A DNA stretch of 64,000 nucleotides. Source: Mytilus californianus. Lineage: Eukaryota. The notes under the pieces were generated by a model, which was not told the DNA's origin, searched no databases, and saw only the letters and a program-made list of their open reading frames with translations. Positions within the stretch are counted from its first letter, which is position 1; each line of letters begins with the position of its first letter. Position numbers and translations under genes: made by a program. The stretch spans positions 63,984,001-64,048,000 of the forward strand of contig NW_026262723.1 of NCBI RefSeq assembly GCF_021869535.1. The letters are read 5' to 3'. Below, piece after piece: positions 1,894-53,577 of the stretch.

Positions 1894-4800
1894 CTATAGC
1901 ATTTTATATATGATATCTTTTGATATTTTTATGGCCATGCCATCTATGTTGGAGATTTCAAAAAGTCCGGAAAACTGAAATCGTTTCTTGATTTTGTTAG
2001 TTTGGTATGTAATAAATGATTTTTTAAATGCCAATTTCCCGTGAACGATAACGATACTGCTCGTTTCATATTCCACCTGAAAAAAAGCATAAAGTACAGG
2101 TATTAGTAGTTATTGAATTATAAAGTTTTAAAGTTATAAGGTTACAGAGCATTAATCGTGATGGAAAAATAAAAACTACCAAGGCAAGAAGGTAATCATA
2201 TATTTTAATTATTGAAAGGATATTTTTTTACACAAAATTGTAATGATGTTGTGTGTTTATTTTCGATTGATAGATTGATAGATTGGTGACTTCTTATATT
2301 TCTAACGACTACCTATTACATACCAATATTAAAATGGAGGTGAAACAGCACCAATTGAAAAATTAGCATTTAGAACTTATGTAAAAGAAGCCCTAATCTA
2401 ACAAAATATAGCTCGCTTTTGAATGTGTTGTCTACTAATAATTGCAAATAGATTTGCATACATGAACATTTGATGAATGAAAAATATTTGGACCATTTTG
2501 AGCCAGTATTAACTTGAGTTGAGTGGCCGTATCATTGACATTTACCAACTATCTACGTTTATTCATATTAAATTCCGGTCAGTAGTCATGTGATATCAAG
2601 AATAGCATCCCATTTTGTCCGAAAAGGGCTATACATGTATCAGCAAAATAAAATATCTTTGTTTCGATAGAACAACAACACAATTATTTAATCATATTAG
2701 TTTTGACTACATAATGGGTCTTTATAAAGGTCTCGTCCTAGCTTGCATGATTTTGAGAGACTGGTGAAAATATTACCTTGGTCACTATAGGTGCATTAGA
2801 AACAATATAGGTGTATGTGTCCTCTAAACCTCTCACTTTTTCATATAATTGTTTCTGTCTTCTAACAAAACTTAACCCACAAACTGCAAATAAAGGAAGA
2901 AAATGTACAGATAATTAATAAAATATGTATATTTAAACTCCATATTTGTTGTTCTTTACATTAAACTTTTTAAACTTTACACAGAGAAAAAATAAGCAAT
3001 TACAGGTCACGGCCTTCAACAATGAGAAAATCACATACCATAAAGTCGGCTATAAAAGGCTCCGACATTGAAAATGTGCAACAATTCAAACAAGACAACT
3101 AACGTCCTAATTCATAACAAAACCATTTTCGGAAAAACAAATATGATGAACATGAACCAACGTTAAGTTATTTCCTATAAAATAATGCAATATCTAAGTA
3201 TAATATATTGTTTCCTGTTTGGTATTAAATTAATAATTAAGATCCATTTTGTTTCATCTGGTGATCCGTTTATTTGGCAATCGCCATGGCAGTCAGCAGT
3301 GTTTAAGAACATCCGTTGTTCGACCTGCTAGTCAAATGCGTTTGGTTAAAATATACTTTTTCACTTTTTTGGTCTTTTGGAAAATATTGTTTGTGCTGTA
3401 TTTAGACCCCTCTACCAAGAAATTTGTTTTGCATGCACACGTATAAAAATTGCGGTTTTTATCCATCGCAATCATAGGTTTGAACGTTGTTTTCAATTTA
3501 GACTTGTTGGTAATATATGATATATATTTATTAATTATATACTTACTTTTTCCAACTATTTGTTCCTCAGTGTGTTTAGTTGTATCAAGTATATCACAAA
3601 CTGGACAACTGTTTACACAACGCTTTGCAATTAGATGTCTAGTTGATCGTTTTCCAAATATTTCTAAAAAGTAAATACCAAAATTGTCGAATACCACAGA
3701 GAAACAGTGTAATATTGCGATACGAAAAGAACAAATTAGAACATGTAGAAAACTGGTATTTAGAATTAGATGAATATTTAATGATAAAAAAGGAGAAGAT
3801 ACCAAAAGGAGGAACTTGCCAAATAATGCTTTAAAATCCGTGAGAGAAAAAATTTTGACATACAAATTATTTATTCACATTTTATAAATTCAACGAGTTA
3901 TTATTATTAACCATCACGAAGAAAATATATAAAATTGATTAATTTCGAACAATACAACTATAAATTTGATTAACACCTTTATCTATTTATTATAACATAC
4001 TTTTAATTCCCTTCCAAATCTTTTTGCCAGTTTTCTTGACTCCTCTTCCAAATTTCCTGATACCATGTCCAACTTTCTTGGTTATTTTGGCAACACCTCG
4101 TCCAATATTCCTGCCGATTTTTGCTACTCCCTTTCCTAATCTTTTAACATGACTTCCTATTTTGGATCCGATTTTCTTAATCCCGACTCTAACTTTTTTA
4201 ATAGCTCCTCCAACTTTTTTTATTGTACTTTTAACCTTTCCTCCTATTTTTTTTACGAACTTTCCTATCTTCTTTCCAAATCTAGCAGCTTCCTTTCCAA
4301 CTTTTTTACCGAAAGATCCCACTTCAGAAATCACTTTGCCAAATATTTTTTCTCCAGCTTTTTTTAAAGTGTCTTCTATCTTAGAAGTTATGCCTTTAAG
4401 TTTTCCAAGTACTTTATCGCTGATTTTTTTAACTACGTCCAATGTTCTTCCAATTACCTTAAGAAAATTCGCTACTTGTATAACAGGGTTATTGATCACA
4501 CTAAGTAACTTTCCTAATTTTATTTTCTTATGATCCTGTCTTGGTTCTCTATAAAGAATACAAATATTAACAAATTCAAATATAATCTGAGTGTTACTTA
4601 AAGATTATCATATGCTTATTTACTGTTAAATATGATATTATTTGTAACATTTTGTATTCTCTAATTGCAATATGGTGGGTAATAAACAATAATGTAAATT
4701 TTCACCGCTTAGAAATATGTGACTGCGAATATATTGTTTAACAATACATTGTTAAAAAAAAATACATAACGACCTGAAAACCCATTACTGTTAGGGTCAA

Positions 4801-6461
4801 TTCTGAAACTCAGATATTATTTTTTCATGCTGGCTGTATACATTCCACGTGCAAATGTGTCTCATATTTGTTGAAACCTTACGAATAACAGACATTCCGT
4901 CCGCTCCAGTTATATTTAATACACAAATGAAAATCTGTGTAAATATAATATTCAACGTGCTCTGTTAAATATGACTACACTTTTGAACATAATAATCCTA
5001 TCCAAATGTTCTTTTTATCAACTACAAAATCTAATTGTGTTTCTGTAGTAATTTATAAGATACACTTTTCCCTAATGCAACAATAATACTATAATAATCC
5101 GAAAGCGGACATATTTCTTAATACCACCTGCTGATTTATAGTTGTAAGTCTGTACAGGAGACAAACTCAAATATTAGACTTGCCTATGTGACACCTGGTT
5201 CAATTGGGGTGGGGGGTCAGATTTAAGATTTGTAGTATAAGATTTTGCTTTCTCTGTGTTTTATTCAATAACCATATACACTGTACTAACATTTCAATAT
5301 TCAAGTCTGTTAAATTATGAAATCAAGTCTACTTACTGTGGTGCACAAATATTTCCAGCACATTCATCACATGACTTTAACGTTCGGTTTACTTTGATTT
5401 CACACGATAATGTTATAACCTTCTCCTCATTTACAGTATCTTCAATTGCATCGACGATATATTTTACAATATCTGCTCGTGCTTGATCGTTTATTTCTGA
5501 AAAAATTTAATGTTTCAAATTATTTATAAGAAATTGTATTCATTTTATTATATTTTGAATTTTTTAGCTTTCTGAAGAGTTTGTTATACTCTATTCGGGA
5601 ACTGGTTTTTTTTTCAAACAACAGTGACATTCTAATTTCATGTTACACATAAGAAAAATAATTTTGAAAATCATGTAATGGTTAAATAAACTGCCTTCTT
5701 TTATTAAAACGATATTTGAACATTGTCATGAACGAAATAATTTTGTAAGATAATGCTTAGAAAATGATTAGGTACGTTGACTTATATATTCTCAATTCCT
5801 TACAATATATGACCAGTAGCTACAAAGTAAATACATAAATGGAAAAAGGACACATTGTAGATAAATAAACATATATGAAAGGAAGAGTGTTTTTATTCCT
5901 GATCTTCATCTTGCCACTGATTTGGTCTTCAGCGATGATTTGAAGAGATAAAAGCTTTAGCATTAAATAAATAAATTAATTGATAAATTAATAAAAAGAA
6001 ACTGTGTTGGATGCACGTCAGAAAAAAAACTAATAAAAATGAGGAAAGAACAAATTATCTAAGGAATAATGTTGTAATAGCCGTATTTCATCTCACATGA
6101 ACAAGTGTTCAACAATAATCCAAACCTCAAACCTCAACTCATAGTTAGGACAAAACGGTCCTTACTCATCGGTTGAAAAAATACATATGCTTGAAAAAAA
6201 TCCACACTAACGCGCACACGACGTGGTTCACTAGTAACGCTCGTAACATGAAATAGTAACGAAACCTGGTGTGGACTGCATAAAGGCATGTTGAAGACGA
6301 CGTGATATGATAATTATTACATGTAAATTAATGAATTTAAAAATCATTCAGTCTATTAAAACATTTAACTTACTATCCAAATTATTTTGTGGAAGTGAGA
6401 GTAGTTCTCCATTACAAGTACAAAGTGCTGCAACTACTGCCACGAGAAGAGGAATGAACAT
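1894..6461 (-). CDS. Secreted precursor gene 1 (400 aa): signal peptide, 4-Cys N-flank, ~180-aa Lys/Gly-rich amphipathic helix, GKR processing site, 4-Cys C-flank; family unassigned
   Basis: Six GT-AG coding exons join in frame: 6461-6374, 5496-5337, 4548-4001, 3663-3547, 2883-2777, 2076-1894 (intron phases 1,2,1,1,0; 1203 nt). Protein: MFIPLLVAVVAALCTCNG-ELLSLPQNNLDKINDQARADIVKYIVDAIEDTVNEEKVITLSCEIKVNRTLKSCDECAGNICAPQEPRQDHKKIKLGKLL...KKTGKKIWKGIKKIFGKRSTRHLIAKRCVNSCPVC...ICGLSF...ISKDIIYKML*. A paralog at 11-16 kb has the same exon phases. Confidence 0.9.
3190..3520. repeat. Dispersed ~300-bp repeat in an intron of gene 1; second copy at ~42140-42420
   Basis: ggtattaaattaat...atccattttgtt...ttggcaatcg...gtttaagaacatc.gttgttcgacctg.tagtcaaatg...gtttgaac.ttgttttcaatttagacttgtt is shared between the two sites. 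Confidence 0.75.
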
Positions 6462-11001: not shown

Positions 11002-14000
11002 TTAAAACATTCGGCTAAAAACTTCTTTTGATATTTTCATAGACATTCCGTTAATGTCAGAGATTTCAAACAATCCAGGAAGTCTAAATCGTTGTCTCAT
11101 TTTACCAGTTTGGAATGTTACAAATGATATCTTGAACTCTACTCTTCCGTCTGTAAAGAGAACACTATTCTTTTCATACTCCACCTGAAAGTGAAAAAAA
11201 AACTCCATACTGGTGTTGAAGATATGGTACTCTCGACTCTCCATATAATAGCCGGGTTGATATAAAAAAAAAAAAGGAAACGTTATAAAAAGAATATCCA
11301 TGACTGGGCATAGGTATTCGTCATGACAATCTATGCTATATATTTTTCAAAAATAATTTGAAAGTCGTCTAAGTTTTTTGTATATTCGGTCAAAGAATTT
11401 TTTTTCATTTTTTTTTAATCGCACATAATAATTACTTACTATTATGTATAGCAATATAACAGACAAAAATAATTCTTGTGTTTATATCATTAGAAAATGA
11501 AAATTCCTCATAACAAAAAAATATCCAAATAAATAAATTAACCAGCGACAATTATAGTTCTAGTGGTACCAAGTCGATTAAAATACGACCAACATTTTTA
11601 TTTCAAACTTTTATATCAAGTTTATACTGATATAGCAAGTGTCGAACTCTCATGTGTTTGCACTGGGTTTAAAAAAAACACAAAGAAAAAAATATTTACA
11701 TATTATAAAGTGTATTCAATACTTATAAATATAGTATTAACTGTTAGAGACTATTGATTTTAAATTGATTTCCTTCATAGGCTCATAACAGTGCACAAAA
11801 ACGGAGGGATTCAATAAATCTCAAACATCTAGAAAGTACATAAATTATAGTAAAAAATTATTCAGGAAATAGTGAGCATTGATTAAAAGCTAGAGACACG
11901 TGACAATTTTTGACCTTTACATTTTAGTTTTCATGAATGTATAGTGATAAGGTACCAATGCTTGACGGATGTTCTTATTACTCCCTCCTCCAATAGCAAT
12001 CCTCGACTAAATCAACACTTATGACTTATAATGGGTTTCGGGTTCCACAAGGAAACAATATGAACATAACCGCATATGTCCTCATGTTGTATTATGCAAA
12101 CTCATTCAATGTTACAATTTCGAAAGGCATTATATGTAAATGCTAAGAGGACTAACTATGTAACCTTCAAACTTATTGATATAGGGTTATTTCAAACTAT
12201 GCGTAGCAATGGCAGGCGAAATTAAAAAAAATACCTTTGAAACAATTGAGTTCTTGGAGAGTATGAATCTGTAAAGAGCTTTTAAATCTTTTATTTTTTC
12301 CGCTGCTATCTTCTGCTTTGTAACAAAAGTGGATCCACAAACTAAAATGACAATGAATATCGTACACATCGGCAAACAAATTTTTAAATGTAAAATAAAG
12401 TACATGTATATTTTGACATATTTATGCAACTGACAAAAGGCATCGAGAATTATTTTAAGATGCCCTTATTGGATCAACTGGAGTATACGGAACAAATGGT
12501 TCCCAGTTGCGCATTATTAATGAGTAAATTTGCAATTATTAAATTATAAATAAAAACATATCGACATATCGCCACATCGACATATCGACACATCGACACC
12601 TCTACATATCGACATATCGACACATCGACATATTGACACATCGACATATCGATACATAGACACATCGACACATTGAAACATAGACACATCGACACATCGA
12701 CATATCGAAGGACTATCGTAAAATTAAATCTATTAAATCGTAATTTTAAAGTTTTTTCAATTTGTGATTTCACATGAGAATATAATGCAAACGCAATAGT
12801 AAAGCTTCATGCTGTGTCAATGACAGTTCGAGTAGCGTATGATGTGTCAGTGTACAATCAAGCACCGTTGTTTGTGTCAATTTGCAGTCTGGCGCCGTAG
12901 GCTGTGTCAATATGTAGTTTAGCGCCGTAGGCTGTGTCAATGTGCCGTCTAGCGCCGTAGGCTGTGTTAATGTGTAAGGTTGAGCCAACTTGTTCTCGTA
13001 CCTCAAACAAATGACAAGATATATTCCTCACTGATATTACTGCCGCTCAATTTTAATGATTTTATTTTGTAGTAAAAATGTGAAACAATCAATTTGAAAC
13101 TTTTGCAAGAATAAAAGAGAGGACATAAAAACGTGTTTTATGGTATAGCATAATTAGATGAAACGTGATGCCATATATCAGGAAACTGACTTGTTAATTG
13201 CTGAGAAAAATTGTGTGAAAGTTTCATATATGTGCATGTTTTAAATATGTTAATGTACAAATATTTTAAATATAAGCTTTTGGCAAACAGGGAATTTACA
13301 AAGGAAATACATCATGGAAGAAACTGCAAACGTGTTGCAAAAGTATGGCATAACGAAATGAACTTTGGTCCCATATATCTAGACACTTTGACTTGTAGTT
13401 TCTGATAAAAATGCAACAGAAATGTGTTTCGGGCAGTTAGCCGCATGAACGTACGTACGGACGAACAGAAGTAAATAAATATATCCCAATCTTTTGAAGA
13501 AGGTTACATACACTGTTAAAATGTACATTTTGTTCTACTTACTTGTTAGTATTATTTTGTCCTGTTTATTCTTGCTGGTATCGACCCGATCACATTGTGG
13601 ACATTTTTTTGCGCAGCGTTTTTTCAGATGTCTGGTTGATCGTTTACCAAAAATACCTGAATTATGTAGAATGTGATATTTATTTCTAATTGTCAAATTG
13701 GTGCATGTATTTTGAAGTGAAAATATCAGTATATGAAAATATTAAAGAAATCTCAGTGTTGGAAAACAGTTTTAGTATTCATGAAACTTAAAGTTTTTGG
13801 TCATTCAAATATTTTGACCTCGAGCCTCCCTGTCTCAAAGCGCTTCTAGTGCAATAAAATTGGTACCGTTAATGTTATTAACAGATTAAGTAACTTATAA
13901 ACGATGCTACACATTTTCTTTTTTTTTCGATAATTTTGTACATGCATATTTTGAAATGTTCTGTAAAATAAAACAATATTCAGTAATTTTTGTGTTATAA

Positions 14001-16121
14001 TGATATCTTTAAAGTTAATCACAATCTTACTTTTAATGCCACCCCAAACTTTTTTACCAGTGTCAACAATACCATTTTTAACCTTATTAGCCTGTTCTTC
14101 AGCTTGATTTAACCATCCTTTCATTTTCCAAGTGACATCTTCGGACCAAGAATTAAGTTTTCTATCTAGATTTTGAACCAACTGCCCAACGTTCTGTCCG
14201 AACTTAGCAGCTTTTGTAATAGGTTTGTTAACTTCGATCAATAGTCCTTTAATGATCTGTTCGTGTATTTGTGGTGGTTTACTATAAATGAATAAAAGAA
14301 CAGTTTAGTATTCATATGCATGAAAGGGAGTCTTGGGTACACTTCAATGAGACAATAAACAAGATAAAAAAAAACAGTTACCATAGCAACAAGCAGTTTT
14401 GTTTTTTTCAAATAAAGAAATGTATATACTTGTTTGTGTGGCAGCTTTTAAAGTGTTATACTTGTTTCGTCATTATTCTTCCACTCCTTTATTTATTAGT
14501 TCAAGATTATTACCAACATGTTTAAGTCCTTTTAAATAAAGGTAGAAACACGCAATTATATGGTAACCGTTGTTTTCCATGTAATTTACTTATAATTGAT
14601 TGATTGTTGTTTGCTTAACGTCCAGTAATTTACTTATAATCAAACGGTTCAAATACTTGTGATCGTTGAATATGTTTAAAATATACAAGTGAGGTAAATT
14701 GTTATAGGTTGAGGGCATGATTCGCATGGGGTTATGGAATGCATACAAGGAGAAGCCTACTATATCGACGCATCTGATATCGCACTATTTTGGATTTCCT
14801 TTCTGTTCATCATTTATGCATGTCATCTGCAGCCTTCTGTGCTCTTATGTTGTAAATGTCAGAAGTGTTTTTAAGCGTTTTTAACACGGAACAAAACTAC
14901 GTATCTTAGTTGTATATATAATCTTATCATACATACGTGCATGTGTCCGTATTTTGCTACTTTTATAATTGAACCACTTATGTTGCTAATTTATTAACAT
15001 AATACCGAATTCCAAGGCAACTTAAAAAAAGGGGGAAGTCCATAAAACCAAACAAAACCAAACGCTCGACTATACCAACCAATGGTACGACTGGAAAACG
15101 GTGATCTATAGTTGCTTGCATACACGTCATTTGGTTTCTGGTGGATAGTTTGTTTCCTTGGCAATACTACCACTCATCCGTATTGTTATATTACAGAGAT
15201 TGGAATAAATTTAACACGGAATAAAATTGAGAATGCATATTTATTTGTATGATTGTCAATATTTCAGATATGAGTTTTGTGACTCAGGCCGGAAAATGTA
15301 TATCAAAAATATTAATCAAATTAAAGGACCAATTTTATATAAATTATAAGCCTGGTAGTTTTATTATCAATATTATCAATAACAAAATAAAACTTACGAT
15401 TGACAACGATTTTTTTCACATTGTGTGCATGATACCATTGTTTTGTTGATGTTGGCCTCGCATTCCAAAGTTGAAAGCGTCTGAATGTTTGTAATCTTTT
15501 CAATTTCATCAAGTATATAAAGTAAAATGTCTTTGCTCGTCTGAATATTTATTTCTAAAATCAAAAACCAAGACCATGTCATTCATAAGTATAATTTAAC
15601 AGTTTGAAATTAAAAAGAACTGTTGAGAAGTTCCAAAAGGCTATAAAAATATGTTGTATTAGATCTCATTTTCCAATTACAATAGGAAATGAGTGCACCT
15701 GATTTTAATGTATATCATAAAACAATTCTTATGTATACTGTCTATTTTCAAGAGAATATTTTGAAACAAACTCTATGTGAACAAGTGGTGACTTGATATT
15801 TACAGTTATAAATTAATGTGGTTGGTTGCCGCCAAACCTCCATATGTATGACAGTAAATAAAACTTCAATTATGTATTTTGGTAACGATGTTCCTTACTA
15901 GGGTAAGCAAAGTGTCTGGAATGACTGTACGCAGTTATATTAATTTTCATATAACCACACAATAAAATCAAACCTAACCTTCCTCTTTTTTTTTTACAAA
16001 ATATCTTATGTAAACATAACTTACTGTTCACGTTGTTTTGATGAAGGGACTCTAAATCTCCAAGACAAAAACAGAAAAATGTTACTACTACTACAAACAC
16101 GGAAAATATCATTTTGTTCAT
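11002..16121 (-). CDS. Secreted precursor gene 2 (302 aa), paralog of gene 1 with a shorter, less cationic helix exon
   Basis: Coding exons 16121-16025, 15554-15398, 14281-14031, 13656-13543, 12341-12235, 11184-11002 (phases 1,2,1,1,0; 909 nt). Protein: MNKMIFSVFVVVVTFFCFCLG-DLESLHQNNVNKINIQTSKDILLYILDEIEK...LECEANINKTMVSCTQCEKNRCQSKPPQ...TGKKVWGGIKSIFGKRSTRHLKKRCAKKCPQC...ICGSTF...ISKEVFSRMF*. The last two exons are the same length as in gene 1 (107 and 183 nt). Confidence 0.9.
12557..12708. repeat. Degenerate 8-bp micro/minisatellite (acatcgac / atatcgac)n, intronic
   Basis: Direct reading of tandem cgacatat/cgacacat units. Confidence 0.9.
12800..12985. repeat. 30-bp minisatellite, about 6 units, intronic
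   Basis: Anchor gctgtgtcaat or a variant recurs at 12811, 12841, 12871, 12901, 12931 and 12961. Confidence 0.9.
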
Positions 16122-17539
16122 TTTCAAAACTGCAATATATAGGCGAAATTTTTTTATTTATACTGAAAAGTTACGCCAGTTTTCAGAATCAAACACAAAA
16201 TAGGTCATGAATATTAGGACCTAACGGCTAAACAATATTTGAAAAATGAAAGAGATTCCCTCGGGTAAAAGAGAGGCGTAAAACATGTTAAATTGTTTTT
16301 TTTTATTCCAACATATGTCACATTGTTTTGAATTGTTCATATTCACAAAGGTCAGACTAGTGCTGCTTAAGATACTATCATAAAGTAGGTCTGCAAAAAT
16401 CTATTGTTTGACACAAACATAAGCACATTCATTTTAAAGTTTTTGTCATATACCACATCAGCAAATTAATAAATTGTTTTGTTTTCTTACCTTTTTTATT
16501 TATTATTTTATTAGCTCAATAATCAAATTATATTTCAAAACAGAATTGATCAGAAAAAGTTGGTTCACTTAGTTTTTTTCTCCAATTTTTTGGTATTACT
16601 GTAAGTCTTCCACAAGAAAGAAATCCACAAATATTTTATTCAAAATAAACATAAAACATAATTTGTAATTATTGAATTATCAAAGAGGAAAAGAAATGGG
16701 TGAGGATGTGGATGGGGTTTACAGAATAGAGAATAATGGGGAAAAATATAAAAAATAGAGAATAATGGGCAAAACGTATAAAAAATAGAGAAAAATGGCC
16801 TAAAAATTAAAGAATTCAGAAATAAAGGACCCCCATCTAGACCCTCATGGGTATGTTTCATTTGTAAAGTTTTTTTCACGTAAAATCAATATGTATAAAA
16901 ACTGACTGTATAAAAAGTAAAGAATATACTAGAACGCATAAAATAATTACTCCCACATATTATCAGATCTATTACAATATGTCACTTCATACGTAGTCAG
17001 GATAGTTTATCGGACTCGATTTGACATATTGTTTTTTTACATGCGCCTCCGGTTTGAATTAATTAAACATTCAAAAGTTATCATAAATTACAAAATAAAA
17101 AGCATTATGAAAATACAATCAAAACCGTGGTAAATCTCAATAAAAGAAACCTTAAATGTCCTTATGTTGAATACTGTGATATGTTGGCGTTCAAACTGAA
17201 AATTCGGTAACAAGATCAACAACGGTCTCCATGGAATGCTAATTAAAATAAATGCAAATCATTATTAAATGATAACATTGTGTAAAGGAGTACTAAATTT
17301 ATCCTCAAAATATGTGACGACAATTTCAATAACTGAAACTACCTCAATTGTCATGAACTTAAAGTAAGCTTAAGTAAACTCGCCAAAGTTCATTGATTCA
17401 TGGTTTTGTTTTCGAAATTGTCTAGTCTAACTTAGTGTTAATATCCTATTTTTGTGGTTAAAAAGTCTATATTTCCGTTTCTTTTCTTATTTGTGATTTA
17501 ATACTAATGATATTTATTAAAAAATAACCAACATAAAAA

Positions 17540-17854
17540 AATAAAAAACGAAAGTGTTTTCATTTTTCGTTTTTGATTTCATTATACAAAAAACGAAAAA
17601 CGAAAGTGTTTTCATTTTTCATTTTTGATTTCACAAAAAAAAAAAACGAAAAACGAAAGTGTTTTCATTTTTCATTTTTGCTTTCACAAAACAAAAAACG
17701 AAAGTGTATTCGGTCCGTGTATATTTGCGTCCATTCGTTTTTCGTTTTGAAATTATCAAAATCAAAAAACAAAAAACGAAAGTGTTTTCATTTTTCGTTT
17801 TTGATTTTGATATTTCAAAACGAAAAAACGAATGGACGCAAATATACACGGACC
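17540..17854. mobile_element. Foldback/MITE-like palindrome (17712-17854) with preceding tandem subunits
   Basis: ggtccgtgtatatttgcgtccattcgtttttcgttttgaaat at 17712 is inverted at ~17812-17854; the aaaaacgaaagtgttttcatttttc subunit is repeated five or more times from 17540. Confidence 0.8.
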
Positions 17855-18019: not shown

Positions 18020-18945
18020 TGAAAATAAGGAGGTGTGGTGTGATTGCCAAAGAGACAACTATCCACCAAAGTTCAAATGAAGTTGGTGTAAGCAATTATA
18101 GGCAACCGTAGGACCTTCAACAATGAGAAAAACCCATACCGTATAGTCGGCTATAAAAGGCCAAGTTTAAATTATCGTAAAAGAGATCTCTCAACTGTCT
18201 TGTAATGTGGAGTTTTCAACTAAATACTCTTTATAAATATTTTGTAATATGAAATGGTTTCCGAAGTTCAAGTGGACTACACCAGAATTGAAGACAATAT
18301 TACACATGACAGTTTGAGAAACTTCTCTTCATCTATAGTATTTTCGATTTTATCGAGATTAAAATTAAGAAAATAATAATTTGGTCATTTATTTCTGAAC
18401 TCATGCTACGTTTTAAAATATTATTCAATTATTCTATTATCTATTTGGTATTTTTCTATAATGTATCCATCAATAAATGTCTAAATTCTTGTGAATTTTA
18501 ACCCATGCTTTAAACATGTAAATGTAACGATTTTGTTCTAACCCCGATACTGACATTTTGAAGGAGTGTGGATTTGTATGGTAGGTGATGAATGCAAAGC
18601 AGAAGACGCTTATCATGTCGACGTACCCGGTCTCGCTAGTTTTGGAATTCATGCTATTCCCTCGGTTTTTGTTCTTATAAAAATAAGAAGATGTGGTATG
18701 ATTGCAAATGAGACAACTATCCACCAAAGTTCCAACGAATTGGATGTAAGCAGTTATACTTAGGCAAGCGTACAGCCTTCAACAACGAGAAAAACGCATA
18801 CCGTATAATCGGCCATTAAAGGCCCCGACATGAAAAATATGAAACAATTCAATTAAGAAACCTGAAGGACTAATTTATGACAACAAATATAACAGACATG
18901 AACCAACGACAACCACTAAACTTCAGGCTCCTGACTTGAGACAGA
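18020..18945 (+). repeat. Two copies (18020-18165, 18680-18945) of the dominant dispersed repeat family of this window
   Basis: Consensus aataagaagatgtggtatgattgccaatgagacaactatccacca...ggccttcaacaatgagaaaa.ccatacc.ta.agtc.gctataaaaggccccga. Other copies at ~1225, 3000, 8890(-), 20430(-), 28990(-), 31030(-), 34760(-), 41605 and 42430. Class (SINE versus non-autonomous DNA element) not determinable here. Confidence 0.85.
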
Positions 18946-36314: not shown

Positions 36315-38843
36315 TCAAGTAAGACTTTTCAAGATATCTACAAGTTTCTTTCTATTTCTAACTCTTGTTTTTTCACCCTTTTTCTTAAAAATCAATTCTT
36401 TTATATCATTATCACTAAGATTTTCAATATCTAACTCATTTACAGTACTAGAACTTTCAACATGACCTGCAGCAAAAATCTCATCATCAATTTGCTTTCG
36501 TCTATCATGTCTACTAGTGAAAATATTATTTTCCCACCATTCTGATTTTTTAACATATTGCCGTTTAGGCCTAGCTACATTTTCTGCATGATTAAACTCT
36601 AACCTCTTTCTGACTTGCAAAGCCTCAGAGGGACCGTCCCATTTGGAACATTTACGTTGATGAATTGTCTTAATTACATCGTTATTTTTCTCAACACCTT
36701 GGTTCGAAAACCTTTTCAAAGAACCATATTTTGAAATAAAACAAGGTACATGGTAGATAAGACAGTGCATATAAGGTGTTACATTACATTTTAAATACCC
36801 TTGTCTCTCGATGGACAAAAAAAGTTCCATCCAACTCTTAATTTTACAAAATATATCAAATCCAGTTACATTTTCACATTCTTTGCTACATACAAATAAA
36901 TAAATGGCATAAAAATCCTGCCATACCTTTACAACCTTTTCTTTTGTATCAGTGTTCAGAACATCTGAATTTAACAATTTGTCTGGCAAATATTTTAACA
37001 ATTTAATTTTTTCACCACCAGATAAGCTGGTCCATTCTAAGTCGTTGCTACCCTTTGGTGTCCAAATATGGAAAACAACACCGCAACTTTGTACCAAATC
37101 TTCAAAATTGTCAATATTCACTGGTTTACAACCACTTTTGATTTCTTTTCTGATTTTATCATCTTTGTTTTTGCAATCATCTATCAAATTTCTTAATAAA
37201 ATGTCAGTTACCCTTAACATCAGATGCAATTCATCAGGTACATAGTGATCAACCCCAATTTCTAATAATGGTTTATGCTTGACACCAAACTGACTTTTAC
37301 TCTGACTACTCAGTGTAACAATTTCATCTATTGAACGCAACATATCTACATTATGGTAAAAATCCCATGCTTTGGAAGTGTCAAATCTGTTGTCTTTGTG
37401 AACTTTGCACCAAGGACAGGCAAAATTACCTGTTGACCCACCTAAACCAAGTAAAATTTGAATAAATTTCATATCCCCACCCACAAAAATGTCTAAATCA
37501 ATATTGTGATCATCAACAGAAATGACTTTTTCCTTAGCTAAAACACTTAGCTGCTCAAAAAGAGGTTTACAAGAAGACCTAAGGTTTTCATAATTCTCAC
37601 TACATTTAACTACAGCTACTGTATTTAAATCATTACAAGATAAGCTACATGTATCATCACTTGATAAAACCTGAACAGAAAAAATTACAAAGTTTGAAAT
37701 TCTGCTCACACGAGCACCATCACCTGAAAATTTAATGTCTAATTTGTTTACATTTGATAAATTCTGAAAGTTCTGCTTTATAACTCTTTTCAACTCTGTA
37801 TCTAAATTAATCATTGCCCCTGGCATGTTACCAGGTAACCTCTCTAAGTGAAAAATTTTGTTTATGTCATTTCTACTTTGAACCACAATATATTTTCGAG
37901 GCATGTTATCGAACAGCATTGAAAATTCATGATACGCGGAATCACTCACACAAAATTTGTCTAATAAAAAAACCAATTGTCTCAAATTGTCTTTCTCGCT
38001 TGCTTGTAGAGTGTCATAGCTGTCTTGTGATGGGGAGTTGCTCAAATTCAAGGAAACTTTTTTACCAGCATCTGATATACAGTCTAATTTAGTAGGATTC
38101 AAGCCAAAAGTGTTTGCAAAACACAATGCCTTTTCAGCATAGCTTTCTAATGTTTTCAACTTCCGGAGTCTTTGCCTTGGTTGTAAATCATCAAACTTTT
38201 TTCCACTATTAGAATATTGCTGTTTTTCGATGTTCTCTATATATGTGGTCAGTGTTGAATTTCTCTTTAAAATATATTCTATTTGGTCAATACATGTGTC
38301 TAAATTTTCAGCAATGTCTGCACTCTGATTTTGTTCACTTAACAATAAGTTAAAAAGATCTTTGCATTTTTTTTCAAGCTCTACTTTTTCATGGTTGAAT
38401 TCAGATATTCTGCAATTTAAAGAAGCTACATTTTCTAATTCACTCTTAAAAATGGTAATGTTGTATAACTTGTTGTCATACTGGTATCTCTTTGACCCGC
38501 TGCGGTATTTTACCTTGTAATCATTGTAAACTTTTGAACAGAGGCGATTTATATGTCTCTCAACTCTACCACTTGGCAAAAACTGGAGAAATGTCAATTG
38601 AGAATTTATTACAGCAATAAAAGACAATCCTGTATCTTCAGAGGTGTTAAGCAATCTCAATAAAAATTTACTACTAAGTTGTAACGTTAATGCTACTGAT
38701 GTTGAATCTACAGATTGTTTATTAACATGATATGGAGTCTGTTGAGATGTGAAGCTAACGGAATTTTGAAACTTTTGTAGCGAAAGAGGAGACAAAAAGT
38801 CAGACATTGTTAAAAAAGTCAAAAGCACCAAAGAGTGAAACAT
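36315..38843 (-). CDS. RAG1/Transib-like DDE transposase, 842 aa, uninterrupted ORF
   Basis: Motif order matches the RAG1 core: KFSGD375GARVS, VGGD457MKF, FAC476PWC479, VPDELHLMLR, TPYMH693CLIYH698V, SNQGVE718KNN (mouse RAG1 D600, D708, C727/C730, H937/H942, E962). An NBD-like FDDLQPRQRLRKLKTL segment lies upstream and a short helical tail at the C-terminus. Confidence 0.88.
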   Translation of the reverse strand: MFHSLVLLTFLTMSDFLSPLSLQKFQNSVSFTSQQTPYHVNKQSVDSTSVALTLQLSSKFLLRLLNTSEDTGLSFIAVINSQLTFLQFLPSGRVERHINRLCSKVYNDYKVKYRSGSKRYQYDNKLYNITIFKSELENVASLNCRISEFNHEKVELEKKCKDLFNLLLSEQNQSADIAENLDTCIDQIEYILKRNSTLTTYIENIEKQQYSNSGKKFDDLQPRQRLRKLKTLESYAEKALCFANTFGLNPTKLDCISDAGKKVSLNLSNSPSQDSYDTLQASEKDNLRQLVFLLDKFCVSDSAYHEFSMLFDNMPRKYIVVQSRNDINKIFHLERLPGNMPGAMINLDTELKRVIKQNFQNLSNVNKLDIKFSGDGARVSRISNFVIFSVQVLSSDDTCSLSCNDLNTVAVVKCSENYENLRSSCKPLFEQLSVLAKEKVISVDDHNIDLDIFVGGDMKFIQILLGLGGSTGNFACPWCKVHKDNRFDTSKAWDFYHNVDMLRSIDEIVTLSSQSKSQFGVKHKPLLEIGVDHYVPDELHLMLRVTDILLRNLIDDCKNKDDKIRKEIKSGCKPVNIDNFEDLVQSCGVVFHIWTPKGSNDLEWTSLSGGEKIKLLKYLPDKLLNSDVLNTDTKEKVVKVWQDFYAIYLFVCSKECENVTGFDIFCKIKSWMELFLSIERQGYLKCNVTPYMHCLIYHVPCFISKYGSLKRFSNQGVEKNNDVIKTIHQRKCSKWDGPSEALQVRKRLEFNHAENVARPKRQYVKKSEWWENNIFTSRHDRRKQIDDEIFAAGHVESSSTVNELDIENLSDNDIKELIFKKKGEKTRVRNRKKLVDILKSLT

Positions 38844-47800: not shown

Positions 47801-50800
47801 TTCACCATCTTGGATTGTAAAAAGCAAGAGAACCTAAGGTCCAGATTTTCAATCAAGTTAGCAAAATTTGATGAAGCAATGCAGAAAACTAATCTGAATT
47901 TGCATTTAAAAGAACAAATTTATAAGATAATAACTTATAAAAATTAATATTTATTCCAGTGTATATTATTTTTGCTTGATTTTTAATGTTTTTAAATTGG
48001 CATTTTAAGGGGAGGTAATTGTGTAACTGCATTTTCTGAAGGAATCTACATGGAATTTTGCTATTCTATATTTTAGCCAGAAAAACATACGGTGACCCTG
48101 TCTTTTCTTTTGATATTCTCAAAGCATTTTCTTAAAGCTGTAATCTCGAATTTTATTTTACAATGCTATCATTTAGTTTAGATTCTTATCATATGATGAT
48201 GTTTTTTCCTGTATAATCCATACAAAATGTGTCATTTTGTCACAACCTGTAGCTTGAGAAAATGCATGGTGACCTATCATTTTTATTATATTTTTGAATA
48301 TATTTCAATAAAAACTACGTTTTTGGCAAAGTATGAACAAATTCTATCATTTTTATACACCCTTTTACAGGAGTATTTAATATGGTATACAGTTGACTGT
48401 CCATCGTCAACATGTCAGACATTAATTCAAAAACGCTTGTTCCAATATGCATGAAACTTTGGTGAATTAGTTTATATCTATTGACGTGAGCTCCCTTTCG
48501 TTTTTTATAAATTTCGGATTTACCGTTTCCTAATAATAATATAATAAAAAAGATTCTTTTATCGTTTAACATGTGTGATGATGAGGGACTTGTTTTTTAA
48601 TAAATGATTTTAAGATGATTTTATTGAAAAACATATTCTGTAAATTCAGTATTTAAAGTTTTCTTATAAATTCTTTTTTTTTTTTTTTAATTAATCAATT
48701 TTATTGCACCTTTGCTGTTAACAATTTACTCAATCTACAGCTTCAATTAAGTATCCCTTTAAATTAGTTATTGAATATCTAGGGAAAGATATTCAATAAA
48801 GTATATCTATAAAGTAAGTTATATTAATACAGATCAATACATTAGAACAATTCTACATAATTTTTGTTTTTTTACCGGAATACGGTACGTTTCTTAACCT
48901 ATACTGTATATGATTTTTTTATCAAAGCTTCACTGAACCGCGAAATTGATGATGTATTGATCTTTGATACTGATAGCATGACTCTTCAGTCGACAATAGA
49001 ATTTTGAACTTAAAACTTTTTGTTTTGTTTACAACACTGAATTATATAAGAAGTCTTGGATGATGAGGTAAAAATGTTTTTTTTTTCACACATTATTTTT
49101 TAACAGTAAATGTTGATTTCTATGATAAAGCCGAAGATCGAAAGTTGATCGAAAGTACACGTGGTCTTCAAATTATACATGTATGCAGTAACGTTGCATT
49201 GTGTTGTGTATTCTGCTCGCTCTCCTGCTGATTATAATTTTGCATTGTGAACAGGAATAAACATATTTAATAACAATTCTAATTCAGTGTAGCTGCAAGG
49301 ATTTGTATAGTGAGCTCACTATACAAATCCTTGGTAGCTGTAATAAATTATAAAAGAGTAAAATTGCAAATTTCAGTTAATGCACACCAATTGACTGGAC
49401 ACATGTGCAGTCATGTATTAATGAGGTCACAGCTAAGACTTGTATCTAATAATTGTCATTTCATTTAAAGGAATTCGAAATATTCCCTTGTTTTAAGTAT
49501 TATTTTCTTGTTTTTTTTGCTTCTGATTTTATTTATGTTTATAATGTCCCAGATTTCATTTTTGAAGATTTTGAAGATATCAATGACCTTATCTTTCTTG
49601 TCAGACATATAATATGCTTTATAGATGGAAAAGAAAATTATAGTTAATAGATAGTTCATATCAAAATAAGCTTCATCATCAATTTTATAGCCAGTTACTA
49701 AACTTTCAAGACTAAGTATATGCTTATCAATTTTTAAAAATGCTAATAGCTGGTCAACTTTATGCCAATAATGAACATTATATGAACAGGAAAAAAAGAA
49801 GTGTTTATAATCATCATGTTGCTTACAATAGAAGCACAAACCACTTGGTACTATTTTCCATTTATAAAGTAATTCATTACAGGCTAATATATAATGTATT
49901 ATTTTCCATTTAAACATTTTAAATTTGTTGTTTTCAAGGTAGTTAAAAATAAAGTTAAATGTGGACTTCAATTTTGTAGTCATTTTTTTATGAAGAATTC
50001 TTTCCCACATTAAAACTCCTGTCGGTTAATCATGTGTAAATTGACTTTGCAAGAAAGTATATACTTCTTTGTTACTCATATCTGGTGAAATTTCATGTTT
50101 TAGTAGTATATTTAACTTCACTGATGTTTTTATGTTGACAACAGTTTTGTAAGAGCTTTCTTGTTTTAAAATATTTTGCCAGTGCTTTGGTATAGCTTTT
50201 TTAACTAATGAAAATTTTCTAATCCAATCTTGTTTATTCTTTAAATTTTTTAGTACAGTTTCTGATGATATGTATCCGTTTTCATCTAATATATTATTGA
50301 TGTACAAAATATTACTATTAATCCAGTTTTGAAAGAACAAACATTTCCCATTTTCTTTGATAAGATGATTTCCCCATATAAGTTGTTTTCTAACCTGAAG
50401 AAAGTTTCTTGGTATGATTGTTTGGCCTCCTTTTATTTCTACCCATGTTTTAATTAATTGTTTATAGAATTCAGGTAAAGATTTATAATCTATTTTATTA
50501 AGCAAATTAACATTTGTTAAATTCATTCTGAATAAAAGAAAATCTTTCCCAAATTTATCAAGGTAAAATCTTGGAATAATTTTCCAGTTATCATTTTCCT
50601 TTTTGATTAGTTTTAAAACCCATCTGATTTGTAATGATTTAAGATAGCAGTCTAAATCAATCATTTGTAATCCTCCCTCAAGATATGGTTTACATAATAT
50701 AGTACGTTTAACTTTATCTTTTTTTCCACTCCATATAAAATTATATATTAAATTCTTGAACTTTTGCTTTATTTCCTGTGTTATTATCATACTTGATGCA

Positions 50801-53577
50801 ATGTATGTTAGGTTTGGTAAAATTAAAGACTTAACTACAGTTATCTTTCCTATTAATGTTTAGTTTCGTTTGTTCCATCCTTGAATTATTTTTTCACATT
50901 TGTCTATTTGCTTTTCTGTATTTAATTTATGACATTCTTGATAATTGTATCCAAAATATATTCCTAGACTTTTAATGTGGTCTTGTTTCCAGTTTATATT
51001 TTCAAATTTATCTTTTGAATGTTTAAGTTTCCCAAGCCACAAACCTTCTGTTTTATTTCTATTCAATTTAAGTCCAGAAAGGCTTCCAAAAGTTTCAATA
51101 ATGTTAAGGGCTATACTTATTTCTTTGCGTGTTTTTAAAATCAATTGAGTATCGTCTGCCAACTGACATATTTTTAGCGAGCAAGATTTTCCATCTAATT
51201 TGATTTCAAATCCTTTTAGTTTGTTATTTTCCCTTAATTTAATTGCCATTATTTCAACAGATAAAACGAAAATTAACGAGGATAACGGACACCCTTGTCT
51301 AATCCCACGGAATGTATTAAAGGGGGCAGACACCCATCCATTATTTAAAATACACCCTTTTATATCTGTATACATAGTTTCAACCCATTTAATGAATTCC
51401 TTTTTAAAACCAAATTTTTTTAAAGATTCAAACATAAAACACCACTCCAGTGAGTCGAAAGCTTTAGTAAAGTCTAAAAATAAAATTGCACCATCTACTT
51501 TAAATTTTTCAGAATAATCAATGATGTCTTGGATTTGTCTAATATTAAATCCTATGTATCTGTTTTTTATGTAACCTTTTTGATCAGAGTGAATTATTTT
51601 TGGAAGTACTGATTTTAATCTTTGCGCTAAGGCATAGGCTAATAATTTAACATCATAATTTAATAATGTGATAGGTCTATAGTTATCAAGGGAGAGTGGA
51701 TCATTTTTTTTTATACAAAAGAGATATAGCTCCAATTTTTTGGGAGTTGGTTAATTCACCTTTTTTAAAGCAATAATTGAAAACGGGTACTATCAAATCT
51801 TTAATTTGTTCCCAGAATTTTCTATAAAACTCAACATTTAGTCCGTCCAAACCTGGGGCTTTGTTCAGTTTCATTTTAAATATAGCCTCTGTGCATTCAC
51901 TTATAGTAATTTTTCCTTCACATATATTGCTTTCATTTTCATTAATTTTTTTACATTCTTTAATAGTTTCAAAGTACTTTCTTACCTCTTCTGTGTCAGA
52001 TTTTGTTGAAGTATATAATTTAGTATAATAATTAACTTCTAGATTTATTATTTTGTTTTGGTCATATGTTACCTGTTTATTTTCATCATACAGTTGAGTT
52101 ATAGTTTTCTTATAAATTCTGATTGATATAATTATAATTTATTACAAGCCTGAAGGGAACCTGTAAAAGTAAACCTAAGCTGGGTTTATCCTTAATCAAC
52201 TGAAAAATTATGAAGTTAATTAATCAATAATGGATTATAATCTTGATGATCAGATATGTTTTCATAATCATATAAAATAAATAATTGGCCATAAAGTTCA
52301 AAGAAAATTAGAAAAGGGACACAGGCTAATTTTCACTCAACAACGAAGCCATCAATGTTCATGTTTGCACAATAATTTTCACCTTATATATGTGTTCAAT
52401 CAAGTAAATTGTTATGACCCTTTATTTTTTGTAAAAAAAATATTCTTTTAATATCTGAGATGGTCTTCTGCAAGAATTGAAGGAACAAATTGACAGACAT
52501 ATTTATTCTACTTTTGATATCAAATTCCAAACATAAACTCAGCCTTCACGCTTAACTTTTGAGTCCACAAGCCAGATGCTCAATATTTTGAAAATTTTAG
52601 TTGGATTCTGTTGGCTTGTAGAGGAGAATTTTACAAGCCCGAAAGCAATGTTACAAGCCATGGCCGTAGGACTTGTGGTTAAGCGTGAAGACTGTAAACT
52701 AAAGCATTAAAATCTTATTTAAAGTTGGATATACATATATATATAACAATACAATATACATGTATTAAAGCTCTAAACATATATAAATATTCAAAATGTT
52801 CAATAATGTCATATATATTATTTTTATGTAGAATTACTTCATTATTTCTCATCTATATAAGAATAACTGATGTATAGGATTCTGACTGCCTACTAAATCA
52901 GATTAGACTCTAATATTTTTGACAATCAATGCTTTTGAATGGGTTCACATGGTTTGAACCCTCCCTTTTGCAAATTGCTGGATCTGCCCCTTTAGGCTAT
53001 ACTTCTGATCATGTCTACTATAAAATTAAATGACTATTTAAGAATATTGTATAATTGTTGAAAGCAGTATAGTATAGACTATAGTGTCCTGTAAGTATTC
53101 ACATTTTCTTCTTATCAATTATATACCTGTTGGTTAACTTAAACTTAAATGTATGTATAAGGTTTTATTGGTTTTTATTTTTTTATTTTGGGAAAAAAAG
53201 AGGGGGGGGGGTAGTGAATATTACCGACATGTATTAAATGCCACAGACATATATATATATATATGTCTCTGCAAATGCACTATACTTCTAAACATTACAA
53301 GAACCGTAGGATGGAAATGTATTATAAATAAGCGGGTTTAAGTATGTCTGCATTGAATTATTGACGAGAACTCTCGGAAAACTATAAATTAAAGTAATCA
53401 TAAAATCATACAAATCCTTACCTCTTTAGGAAAATACTTTGCAGTGATGATTCTCTCAATCTCATACTCTTCAGGCAGTACTTCGTGTCTCTGCACCATC
53501 TTCTTACTGTCTTTTGGAAGGCTTTCGCCGGAATCCAATAACTTATAGTTGATCTGACGATTAGGTCTTAAGAACAT
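38881..53577 (-). CDS. Two-exon chromodomain protein, 210 aa (exons 53577-53422 and 39357-38881; 14,064-bp intron)
   Basis: GAG|gtaagg donor and ttttttttcag|GGT acceptor join in phase 0 to give ...EEYEIERIITAKYFPKE|GELYLVKWKGFALHDTTWEPRQHI..., a canonical chromodomain, followed by ~130 aa without stops to TGA at 38881. Confidence 0.87.
40971..41477. mobile_element. 507-bp foldback MITE with 9-bp TSD (Mutator-type)
   Basis: Inverted arms built of ggacaaaaagtcaca repeats; ATGTTATCA duplicated at 40962-40970 and 41478-41486. Confidence 0.85.
42430..42780 (+). repeat. Long copy of the dominant dispersed repeat family
   Basis: Begins aaagatgtggtatgattgccaatgagacaactct, matching the 18680 consensus. 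Confidence 0.85.
44383..45447 (+). mobile_element. Non-autonomous Helentron/HINE-like element with an internal ~160-bp tandem array
   Basis: 5' hairpin tatacgaccgc...gcggtcgtata; three internal units (acaataact...gtgaatggatctct.tgaaatt.tacc..aaggtt) at ~44500, 44650 and 44815; 3' gcggtcgtatccagctgcgctcaacgaagca; T-rich flanks. Confidence 0.7.
47185..47748 (+). mobile_element. 3' fragment of a CR1/L2-group LINE
   Basis: KRLCPLCIKEVEDEYHFALKC...CRQKLF C-terminal Cys/His motif, then a 3' UTR, AATAAA at 47722 and an (ATTTG)4 tail. Confidence 0.75.
48675..52102 (-). mobile_element. 5'-truncated L1/Tx1-type retrotransposon, inactive ORF2
   Basis: RT motifs (NYRPITLLNYDVK, GIRQGCPLS, QLADD) and a C-terminal zf-RVT region. 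ORF pieces 51735-50860, 50790-50026 and 50010-49465 are in one frame, separated by two in-frame TAA; there is one homopolymer frameshift near 51710. Poly(A) tail and AATAAA near 48675-48705; 18-bp TSD agttttcttataaattct at 48657-74 and 52103-20. Confidence 0.93.
52540..52694. mobile_element. 155-bp MITE with CAG...CTG termini and 6-bp TSD
   Basis: cagccttcacgcttaac / gttaagcgtgaagactg inverted termini; taaact at 52534-39 and 52695-700. Confidence 0.8.

Follow-up and report, generated by a model that had tools for sequence, protein, structure and literature searches.

A polycationic amphipathic module in a predicted secreted glycoprotein family of mussels and related bivalves

Within a 64,000-nucleotide stretch of the Mytilus californianus genome (contig NW_026262723.1, positions 63,984,001 to 64,048,000; hereafter the window), positions 4001 to 4548 of the minus strand encode a long Lys- and Gly-rich segment that is the middle module of a predicted secreted protein of 400 amino acids, not a stand-alone peptide. 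The module forms the polycationic central part of a putative glycoprotein, expanded in one lineage, and its helical periodicity exceeds that of every shuffled version of its sequence. With a probability of about 0.5, we read it as a tethered module that would bind anionic membranes or polymers multivalently and probably serves in defence. A preliminary description of the DNA, made from the letters alone, had singled out the same positions as one exon encoding either an unusually long cationic helix or a polyprotein of several cecropin-like peptides; calculation bears out the former, an apolipoprotein-like periodicity without charge balance, while the latter is unsupported.

The exon is the third of six in the M. 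californianus gene LOC127708553 (gene 1), which lies on the minus strand. The gene model was built with related Mytilus proteins as guides, using tblastn with P0006 and P0004, splice sites, and the spliced open reading frame (ORF). All introns are GT-AG, and the spliced ORF of 400 residues is intact. Its exons, and the two parts of exon 3, are as follows.

6374..6461, minus strand: gene 1 exon 1, ATG and predicted signal peptide (MFIPLLVAVVAALCTCNG...), donor GTAAGT, phase 1
5337..5496, minus strand: gene 1 exon 2, N-terminal helix, conserved N-x-T sequon, and Cys cluster
4001..4548, minus strand: gene 1 exon 3 (the flagged stretch), 182 codons, +45, Cys-free Lys/Gly/Ile/Val amphipathic helix region
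4314..4547, minus strand: exon 3 residues 1 to 78, amphipathic, moderately basic (+2 to +3 per 20 residues)
4002..4313, minus strand: exon 3 residues 79 to 182, polycationic core (+6 to +8 per 20 residues)
3547..3663, minus strand: gene 1 exon 4, K-I-F-G-K-R, spacer STRHLIA, second K-R, and C281-x3-C285-x2-C288
2777..2883, minus strand: gene 1 exon 5, invariant C306-G307 and long helix
1894..2076, minus strand: gene 1 exon 6, C-domain beta-sheet and terminal helix, VTKVEYE.. motif; stop codon at 1896..1894

The encoded protein thus ordered begins with the signal peptide and an N-terminal helix with the Cys cluster C61-x10-C72-x2-C75-x4-C80 (5404..5345, coded by exon 2), followed by the exon 3 module (protein residues 84 to 265) and the FGKR site (3658..3647). 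After the second K-R (3625..3620) come the C-side cluster, C281-x3-C285-x2-C288-x17-C306-G, and a C-domain in which a helix is followed by some five beta strands and a last helix.

The borders of exon 3 are canonical, in agreement with the single exon described earlier: a polypyrimidine/AG acceptor ending in ...TTTATAG directly precedes it and a GTATGT donor directly follows it, and its 548 nt comprise 182 complete codons flanked on either side by one base of a split codon. An SML-stop end of the exon 3 reading frame occurs only if intron 3 is retained; in the gene model, the exon splices on at the GTATGT donor. A word search with exon 3 returned one match, the M. galloprovincialis hypothetical protein P0001, which runs beyond this apparent stop into '...FGKRSTRHLIAKRC...', and the same sequence is found downstream in the window. 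Searching with the C-terminal part recovered seven further Mytilus proteins, among them the RefSeq entry P0005 (uncharacterized protein LOC127708553, M. californianus), which is 100% identical to the window across exon 3. The RefSeq model (373 aa, beginning 'MTK') does not contain the signal-peptide exon at 6374-6461. That exon is included in M. coruscus P0075, a 400-aa protein that is collinear with the gene 1 product, gapless, and 95% identical to it. A predicted isoform of M. trossulus (P0008, LOC134727041 isoform X2) skips the 39-codon exon 4 and so is without FGKR and three of the four C-side Cys.

Exon 3 encodes 45 Lys and 9 Arg, 4 Asp and 5 Glu, 29 Gly (16%), 22 Ile, and 20 Val, with neither Cys nor Tyr. 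The 54 basic residues of the preliminary description are exact, and its Cys-free stretch of about 180 residues holds; its seven acidic residues are in fact nine, which brings the net charge to +45 rather than about +47, and the acid-free tail that it put at some 100 residues holds for the last 96, the final acidic residue being at position 86. The first 78 residues contain eight of the nine acidic residues and have a hydrophobic phase that is offset from the remaining exon, while the core (residues 79 to 182) has one acidic residue, E86, a nearly constant hydrophobic stripe, and Gly at the interface.

The hydrophobicity power spectrum of exon 3 peaked at 99.3° (range, 99 to 100°), or 3.63 residues per turn, with a power of 41 to 44. 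Spectrum maxima of shuffled versions averaged 8.2 ± 1.8, and the observed power was reached by none of 1,000 shuffles. The mean 18-residue hydrophobic moment was 0.59 versus 0.25 ± 0.03 in shuffles; 45 of the 54 basic residues lay more than 90° away from the hydrophobic direction, and 18 of the 29 Gly were located at the polar/non-polar interface. In helical projection, the hydrophobic stripe is about 120° wide, Gly borders it, and Lys and Arg fill the other face. Across residues 67 to 182 the local hydrophobic phase drifts by only about 55°, giving a single straight stripe. The claim that hydrophobic residues recur every three to four positions is upheld by these calculations. The 11-mer-like periodicity that had been proposed held in part. 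Self-similarity by lag peaked at 7, 11, 18, 29, and 36, so that lag 11 is present, and exact 11-residue units were found in the paralogs P0002 to P0004, but the register of gene 1 is mixed heptad/hendecad, with 18/5 = 3.6 residues per turn, and not a pure 11/3. The only tandem repeat in the exon 3 DNA was a 21-bp repeat of 2.3 copies, and the periodicity of gene 1 therefore resides at the protein level.

A glycine zipper was considered for exon 3 and rejected, with five GxxxG motifs observed versus 4.4 expected and GxxxGxxxG absent. ORFs on the plus strand at 4024-4533 simply mirror the Lys/Gly codons and are not genes. An E-A-A-R-F-G-K block (4265-4285, minus strand; gene 1 residues 171 to 177) was invariant in all seven sequences of the Mytilus clade, the next residue being K or R; at the motif level, it resembles a putative RF-amide type cleavage/amidation signal.

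An exhaustive profile search with an alignment of the C-part (A2) revealed that gene 1 belongs to a larger family. After removal of spurious bacterial proteins (the long P0018, P0022, and P0030, which are BACON, SpaA, and subtilase proteins), there were 26 matches, with E-values of 3e-76 to 1e-5 for the bivalve members. These came from Mytilus spp., Magallana gigas, M. angulata, Pinctada imbricata, Mizuhopecten yessoensis, Pecten maximus, and Tegillarca granosa, as well as transcript-length contigs. All taxon-labelled matches were from pteriomorph bivalves (mussels, oysters, scallops, and ark shells), and every name was 'uncharacterized' or 'hypothetical'. In an alignment of 21 family sequences (A3), three N-side Cys, the Asn of the N-x-T sequon, and three C-side Cys with the following Gly were invariant, and the Thr of the sequon, the Phe of an F-G-basic-basic motif, and a V-T-K-V-E-Y-D block were nearly so. 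The family feature set, present across A3, consists of a signal peptide, C-x10-C-x2-C with N-x-T, amphipathic central repeats, F-G-basic-basic, C-x2-C...C-G, and a V-T-K-V-E-Y-D-type C-domain, all of which are carried by gene 1 and by a tandem paralog in the window (gene 2, described below). A basic site closes the central region in every full-length member (G-K-R, G-R-R, or RRRR; in P0017, RRKR lacking the Gly). Directly ahead of the first C-side Cys, many members carry another dibasic pair. The innermost Cys pair (C80 and C281 in gene 1) was either present or absent as a pair across the family, giving 4+4 Cys, or 3+3 in oysters and scallops; in Tegillarca-type members C80 is present and the partner Cys lies at a different spacing among extra Cys. 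Such joint presence and absence is what an antiparallel disulfide ladder predicts, and we regard it as suggestive rather than strong.

Pfam scans of exon 3, the N- and C-parts, and the 21 members identified no family above threshold, and sub-threshold matches (ApoLp-III, Suprabasin GxHH, Collagen_mid, DUF948, and others) were set aside as composition-driven. For the polycationic core, a word search of 5.8 billion proteins found no relatives of 55 to 182 residues and no short stand-alone kin. We found no paper that mentions the family loci, accessions, or peptide strings, and a literature keyword search on lysine-rich amphipathic Mytilus antimicrobial peptides (AMPs) returned nothing relevant. 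These proteins are predicted to constitute a secreted glycoprotein family that is restricted to bivalves and so far undescribed.

Central regions vary in length from 38 to 276 residues across the family (about 200 in the gene 1 protein), and their hydrophobicity peaks at 97 to 101°, except for two regions of 38 residues (90 to 91°). Because this peak is shared by members whose central region exceeds 40 residues, the amphipathic helical repeats represent the ancestral state, and the ancestral module was presumably a near-neutral, apolipoprotein-like amphipathic repeat. Net charge of the central region is between -12 and +7 throughout the family and reaches +42 to +52 in only one Mytilus clade. 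In a tree computed from the flanking domains only, the polycationic genes grouped with gene 2 (support, 100/99), which places the polycationic state as derived and Mytilus-specific. One family scaffold bears very different central chemistries, namely neutral, His-rich, acidic, and polycationic. The His-rich module was seen in P0029, a transcript-length contig (12 His in 78 residues, with G-H-x-I-x-H-type repeats), and the acidic one in P0016 from Mizuhopecten (net -12).

Between Mytilus species, the exon 3 module is as conserved as the folded flanks. It shares 85% identity with M. galloprovincialis P0006, for which the N and C parts have 81% and 83%, and 96% identity with M. coruscus, where the flanks have 94%. 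Substitutions relative to P0006 are mostly K/R and I/V exchanges, and the single indel comprises seven residues. P0002-type genes or alleles have central lengths of 194, 205, and 216 residues, that is, exact 11-residue steps, with five, six, or seven copies of a G-K-N-I-G-R-G-V-G-R-I-like unit. Together, the identity of the module, the nature of its substitutions, and the 7- and 11-residue steps argue for selection on an uninterrupted amphipathic register. The length series was observed in P0002, P0066 to P0069, P0003, and P0076 (M. galloprovincialis, M. edulis, and M. trossulus).

Structure prediction with AlphaFold2 was uninformative when seven close sequences were used (predicted local distance difference test [pLDDT], 43.5). 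With the 21-sequence alignment, the flanks reached a pLDDT of 76 to 91, with 76 to 83 for the exon 2 helix, 84 to 88 for the exon 5 helix, and mostly 86 to 91 for the C-domain, whose last residues were at 79. The overall model (predicted template modelling score, 0.54) has a long N-helix, the Cys region, a helix, five strands, and a helix. The module was drawn as four to five long helices (block-mean pLDDT, 31 to 73) with breaks near exon 3 residues 65-69, 113-116, and 146-155; values of 61 to 73 over the first ~45 residues fell below 50 after about residue 55. A Foldseek search against the PDB (350,542 chains) gave no match at E ≤ 0.001. Human clusterin (7ZEU_D) ranked first, not significantly (E = 0.07, probability 0.25, template modelling [TM] score 0.18), and clusterin also ranked 6th and 13th. 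At the sequence level, Pfam Clusterin (PF01093) had no match at E ≤ 10 in the 21 members or in isolated N- and C-parts, and the C-domain profile matched nothing meaningful among PDB sequences.

Clusterin has a signal peptide, five antiparallel disulfides, a central furin cleavage site, and a coiled coil, and the furin cut creates disordered hydrophobic tails that mediate client, receptor, and lipid binding (PMC12527946). The mussel protein is like clusterin (PDB 7ZET/7ZEU) in having a signal peptide, a sequon for N-glycosylation, a pair of Cys clusters whose order is mirrored, a convertase site between the clusters (in the mussel as a motif only), and amphipathic or hydrophobic tails that would arise from that cut. 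The Cys pattern pointed to clusterin independently of Foldseek: the N-side 10-2-4 spacing of gene 1 equals that of clusterin Cys102/113/116/121 (numbered as in UniProt entry P10909). The two differ in the number of Cys pairs (five in clusterin versus three to four in the bivalve family), in the C-side spacing (3-2-17 in the mussel), and in the tails, which are two and short in clusterin, whereas the mussel has a repeat module of about 200 residues, polycationic in Mytilus. The family layout appears to parallel that of clusterin; membership is not established.

Searched against the PDB, the family profile matched ApoA-IV (2e-8), apolipophorin III (7e-5), and ApoE, as well as designed antiparallel helical barrels, in each case within the repeat region, which we read as probably shared periodicity and not descent. 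For exon 3, the ApoLp-III Pfam score was 25.8 bits, below the cut-off of 36.3, and no Apolipoprotein (PF01442) match was listed. Exchangeable apolipoproteins (ApoA-IV, ApoA-I, and ApoE) and apoLp-III share with the module tandem amphipathic helical repeats and an 11-residue register, but the module lacks their zwitterionic class A polar face and Pro punctuation and sits between disulfide clusters. Perilipins, alpha-synuclein, and late embryogenesis abundant (LEA) proteins likewise have a long amphipathic helical periodicity over more than 100 residues; they are cytosolic and roughly charge-balanced, whereas the module is predicted to be secreted, has a charge of +45, and follows an 18/5 instead of a pure 11/3 register. 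Designed antiparallel coiled-coil barrels and helical repeat proteins (for example, sc-apCC-6, PDB 8QAD) resemble it in their hydrophobic seam, with Ile/Val then Gly/Ala, and Lys outside (profile E-values, 3.8e-8 with A3 and 0.017 with A1). These designs are synthetic, so the likeness is one of pattern and not of descent. The exon 3 core alone matched only designed helical proteins among PDB sequences, at E ≥ 0.14. Finally, cationic AMPs such as cecropins, magainin/PGLa, and SMAP-29 have in common with the module a Lys-rich amphipathic helix with Gly, secretion, and a Gly-plus-dibasic amidation signal; the module exceeds them five- to eightfold in length (182 versus about 23 to 40 residues), is tethered to a predicted two-chain scaffold, and, judging by its motifs, would not be set free as a short peptide.

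These features lead us to propose that the module acts as a tethered binder in the following way. The Cys clusters would zip up as an antiparallel disulfide ladder (C61-C306, C72-C288, C75-C285, and C80-C281), which would hold the module as a closed loop in the precursor. Judging by the motifs, furin or a prohormone convertase could then cut at GKR and at the second KR to yield two disulfide-linked chains, and a carboxypeptidase and an amidating enzyme would leave ...K-K-I-F-amide. The module would thereby be freed as a tail of the N-chain, about 185 residues long and probably amidated at its C terminus, with the C-chain held by the disulfides. Given 16% Gly and a charge of +45, the tail in solution may have only loose structure or double back onto its hydrophobic seam. 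On anionic surfaces, such as bacterial membranes, lipopolysaccharide, lipoteichoic acid, or other polyanions, it would turn helical and lie flat, with Ile, Val, and Phe inserted and Lys and Arg on the phosphates. Helix formation on anionic surfaces is the behavior of linear cationic AMPs and of apolipoprotein helices. In humoral or mucosal defence, the tethered tail could then act multivalently, as an antimicrobial or in the manner of an opsonin.

Several observations weigh against this proposal. Confidence of the AlphaFold2 model is low in the module, exceeding 60 only in its first ~45 residues; the clusterin fold match falls short of significance and Pfam Clusterin matched none of the 21 members; and co-occurrence of the innermost Cys may, judging from the tree, reflect just one or two evolutionary events. 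The putative cleavage and amidation are read from motifs only, the narrow hydrophobic face and Gly content also fit a flexible polyelectrolyte role and not membrane attack, and no transcript contigs are on record for polycationic members.

Of the alternatives, the polyprotein put forward in the preliminary description would have the module cut at Lys-Lys or Lys-Arg pairs (F-G-K-K, R-F-G-K-K, F-G-K-R) into short cecropin-like or amidated peptides. Exon 3 does contain 14 dibasic pairs, G-K-K and G-K-R motifs recur, the E-A-A-R-F-G-K block (then K or R) does not vary in the Mytilus clade, and the terminal FGKR is a classical cleavage/amidation signal; the last 25 residues of the module also weakly resemble the sheep cathelicidin SMAP-29 (E = 0.34). 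However, repeated spacer-plus-site units and acidic pro-pieces are absent, the dibasic pairs lie on the polar face within the helix pattern, and the sites conserved family-wide are found only at the C-terminal end of the module, not inside it. A hydrophobic phase that continues for about 115 residues would be pointless for separate peptides, and neither Cecropin nor another AMP family in Pfam matched exon 3 or the 21 members at E ≤ 10. We consider this precursor distinctly improbable. Less probable still is a neutral low-complexity expansion, in which AT-rich replication slippage gave a functionless Lys-rich spacer. Although a genome of about 30% G+C, the Lys codons (30 AAA and 15 AAG), and a variable repeat copy number would suit such an origin, conservation of the module matches that of the folded flanks in three species, with mostly conservative substitutions and one 7-residue indel, the phase coherence of the module is far above that of shuffles, and no DNA tandem array extends over exon 3 beyond the one short repeat.

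The conserved phase also bears on a structural polycation, that is, a flexible polyelectrolyte that, instead of acting on membranes, would condense or cross-link anionic polymers such as mucins, acidic byssal or shell-matrix proteins, or extracellular DNA; strict amphipathic helical phasing would be superfluous in a pure polyelectrolyte. Proteins rich in Lys and Gly are numerous among the materials that mussels secrete, and the extreme net charge, abundant Gly, and narrow hydrophobic face of the module are in keeping with them, as is the wide variation of charge in the family, with its His-rich P0029, which suggests a tunable 'materials' module. The DOPA (3,4-dihydroxyphenylalanine) chemistry of mussel foot proteins depends on Tyr and is therefore impossible in exon 3, and a convertase/amidation motif with a clusterin-like scaffold is more typical of soluble humoral proteins; we hold a structural role to be unlikely. 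A similarly low likelihood is given to a lipid-carrier or extracellular-chaperone role kept from an apolipoprotein- or clusterin-like family ancestor, with positive charge tuning lipid or client preference. Amphipathic repeats in the central regions of all members, the profile likeness to ApoA-IV, apoLp-III, and ApoE together with sub-threshold ApoLp-III Pfam matches, and the clusterin-like architecture, with clusterin first in Foldseek, are what such a role would lead one to expect. Against this, +45 and 96 acid-free positions are a sharp departure seen in one clade only, class A apolipoprotein helices being zwitterionic, and all matches to apolipoprotein families are below curated cut-offs or confined to the repeats.

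A bolder version of the tethered-binder reading, which we hold as speculative and rather doubtful, is that the bivalve family may be a true, highly diverged invertebrate relative of clusterin, whose client- and lipid-binding tail, created by cleavage, was turned in Mytilus by 7/11-residue repeat expansion into a tethered +45 amphipathic helix some 180 residues long. Such giant antimicrobial effectors, anchored to a scaffold and possibly bundle- or pore-forming, would make up a new class.

The tandem paralog of gene 1 lies upstream of it on the same strand.

11002..16121, minus strand: gene 2 (tandem paralog), 302 aa, intact, with the same six-exon plan and phases as gene 1; exons 16121-16025, 15554-15398, 14281-14031, 13656-13543, 12341-12235, and 11184-11002

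Exon 3 of gene 2 has only 83 codons and a net charge of +6. The gene is uncalled in the GenBank assembly record (GCA_021869535.1, JAKFGE010000007.1), for which a 10-kb flank was covered. In M. trossulus, P0072 is an ortholog, as is the N-terminal half of P0071, a fused model that joins gene-2-like and gene-1-like units in the same order as in the window. Clusters were also found elsewhere: a 207-kb contig of M. galloprovincialis carries eight consecutive family gene models, and a contig of M. coruscus carries three; the P0002-type cluster on the former suggests copy-number and repeat-number polymorphism. As for a third paralog in the window, the sole trace was a 22-residue match to the exon 2 helix at 18304-18369 on the minus strand (E = 0.02 to 0.04), with stop codons on both sides, and this candidate was rejected; the match reflects either chance or the decayed remains of a third copy.

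The window as a whole has no N runs and about 30% G+C, and over 16,850 bp it matches the GenBank assembly scaffold JAKFGE010000007.1 with 100% identity. Minisatellites near the two genes (17535-17703 and 12556-12974) are intergenic or intronic and consist of 52-bp (×3.2), 8/24-bp (×19), and 30-bp (×4.6) repeats. Farther along, an uninterrupted ORF of 842 aa at 36315-38843 (minus strand) coincides with the strongest negative GC skew of the window; it had no Pfam match (E ≤ 0.01) and no PDB sequence match (E ≤ 0.1) and may derive from a mobile element. At 49465-51735 (minus strand), the remnant of a long interspersed nuclear element (LINE)-type retroelement was found in three ORFs, two of them matching RVT_1 (1e-34) and zf-RVT (9e-8) and the third, in the middle, being without assignment. 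With regard to annotation, the signal-peptide exon is missing from the RefSeq model of LOC127708553, and the GenBank assembly record leaves out an intact gene 2.

Mussels have long served as a source of AMPs, and the described families are mostly small Cys-rich peptides, together with the myticalins, which are short and linear. Cationic amphipathic helices as such are a known kind of element; the apparent novelty of the mussel module lies in how long it is, in a charge density unbalanced by acidic residues, in being tethered within a processed disulfide scaffold, and in the family to which it belongs. If our reading is true, a multivalent, tethered binder of membranes or polyanions would represent a design that differs from the described mussel AMPs. 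To our knowledge, clusterin is known only from vertebrates, and the bivalve family offers a possible deep origin for clusterin-like extracellular proteins; should that kinship be real, it would show that an extracellular chaperone/apolipoprotein scaffold can be weaponised. The family also offers a case in which amphipathic tails, presumably freed by convertase cleavage, have been retuned to neutral, His-rich, and polycationic forms.

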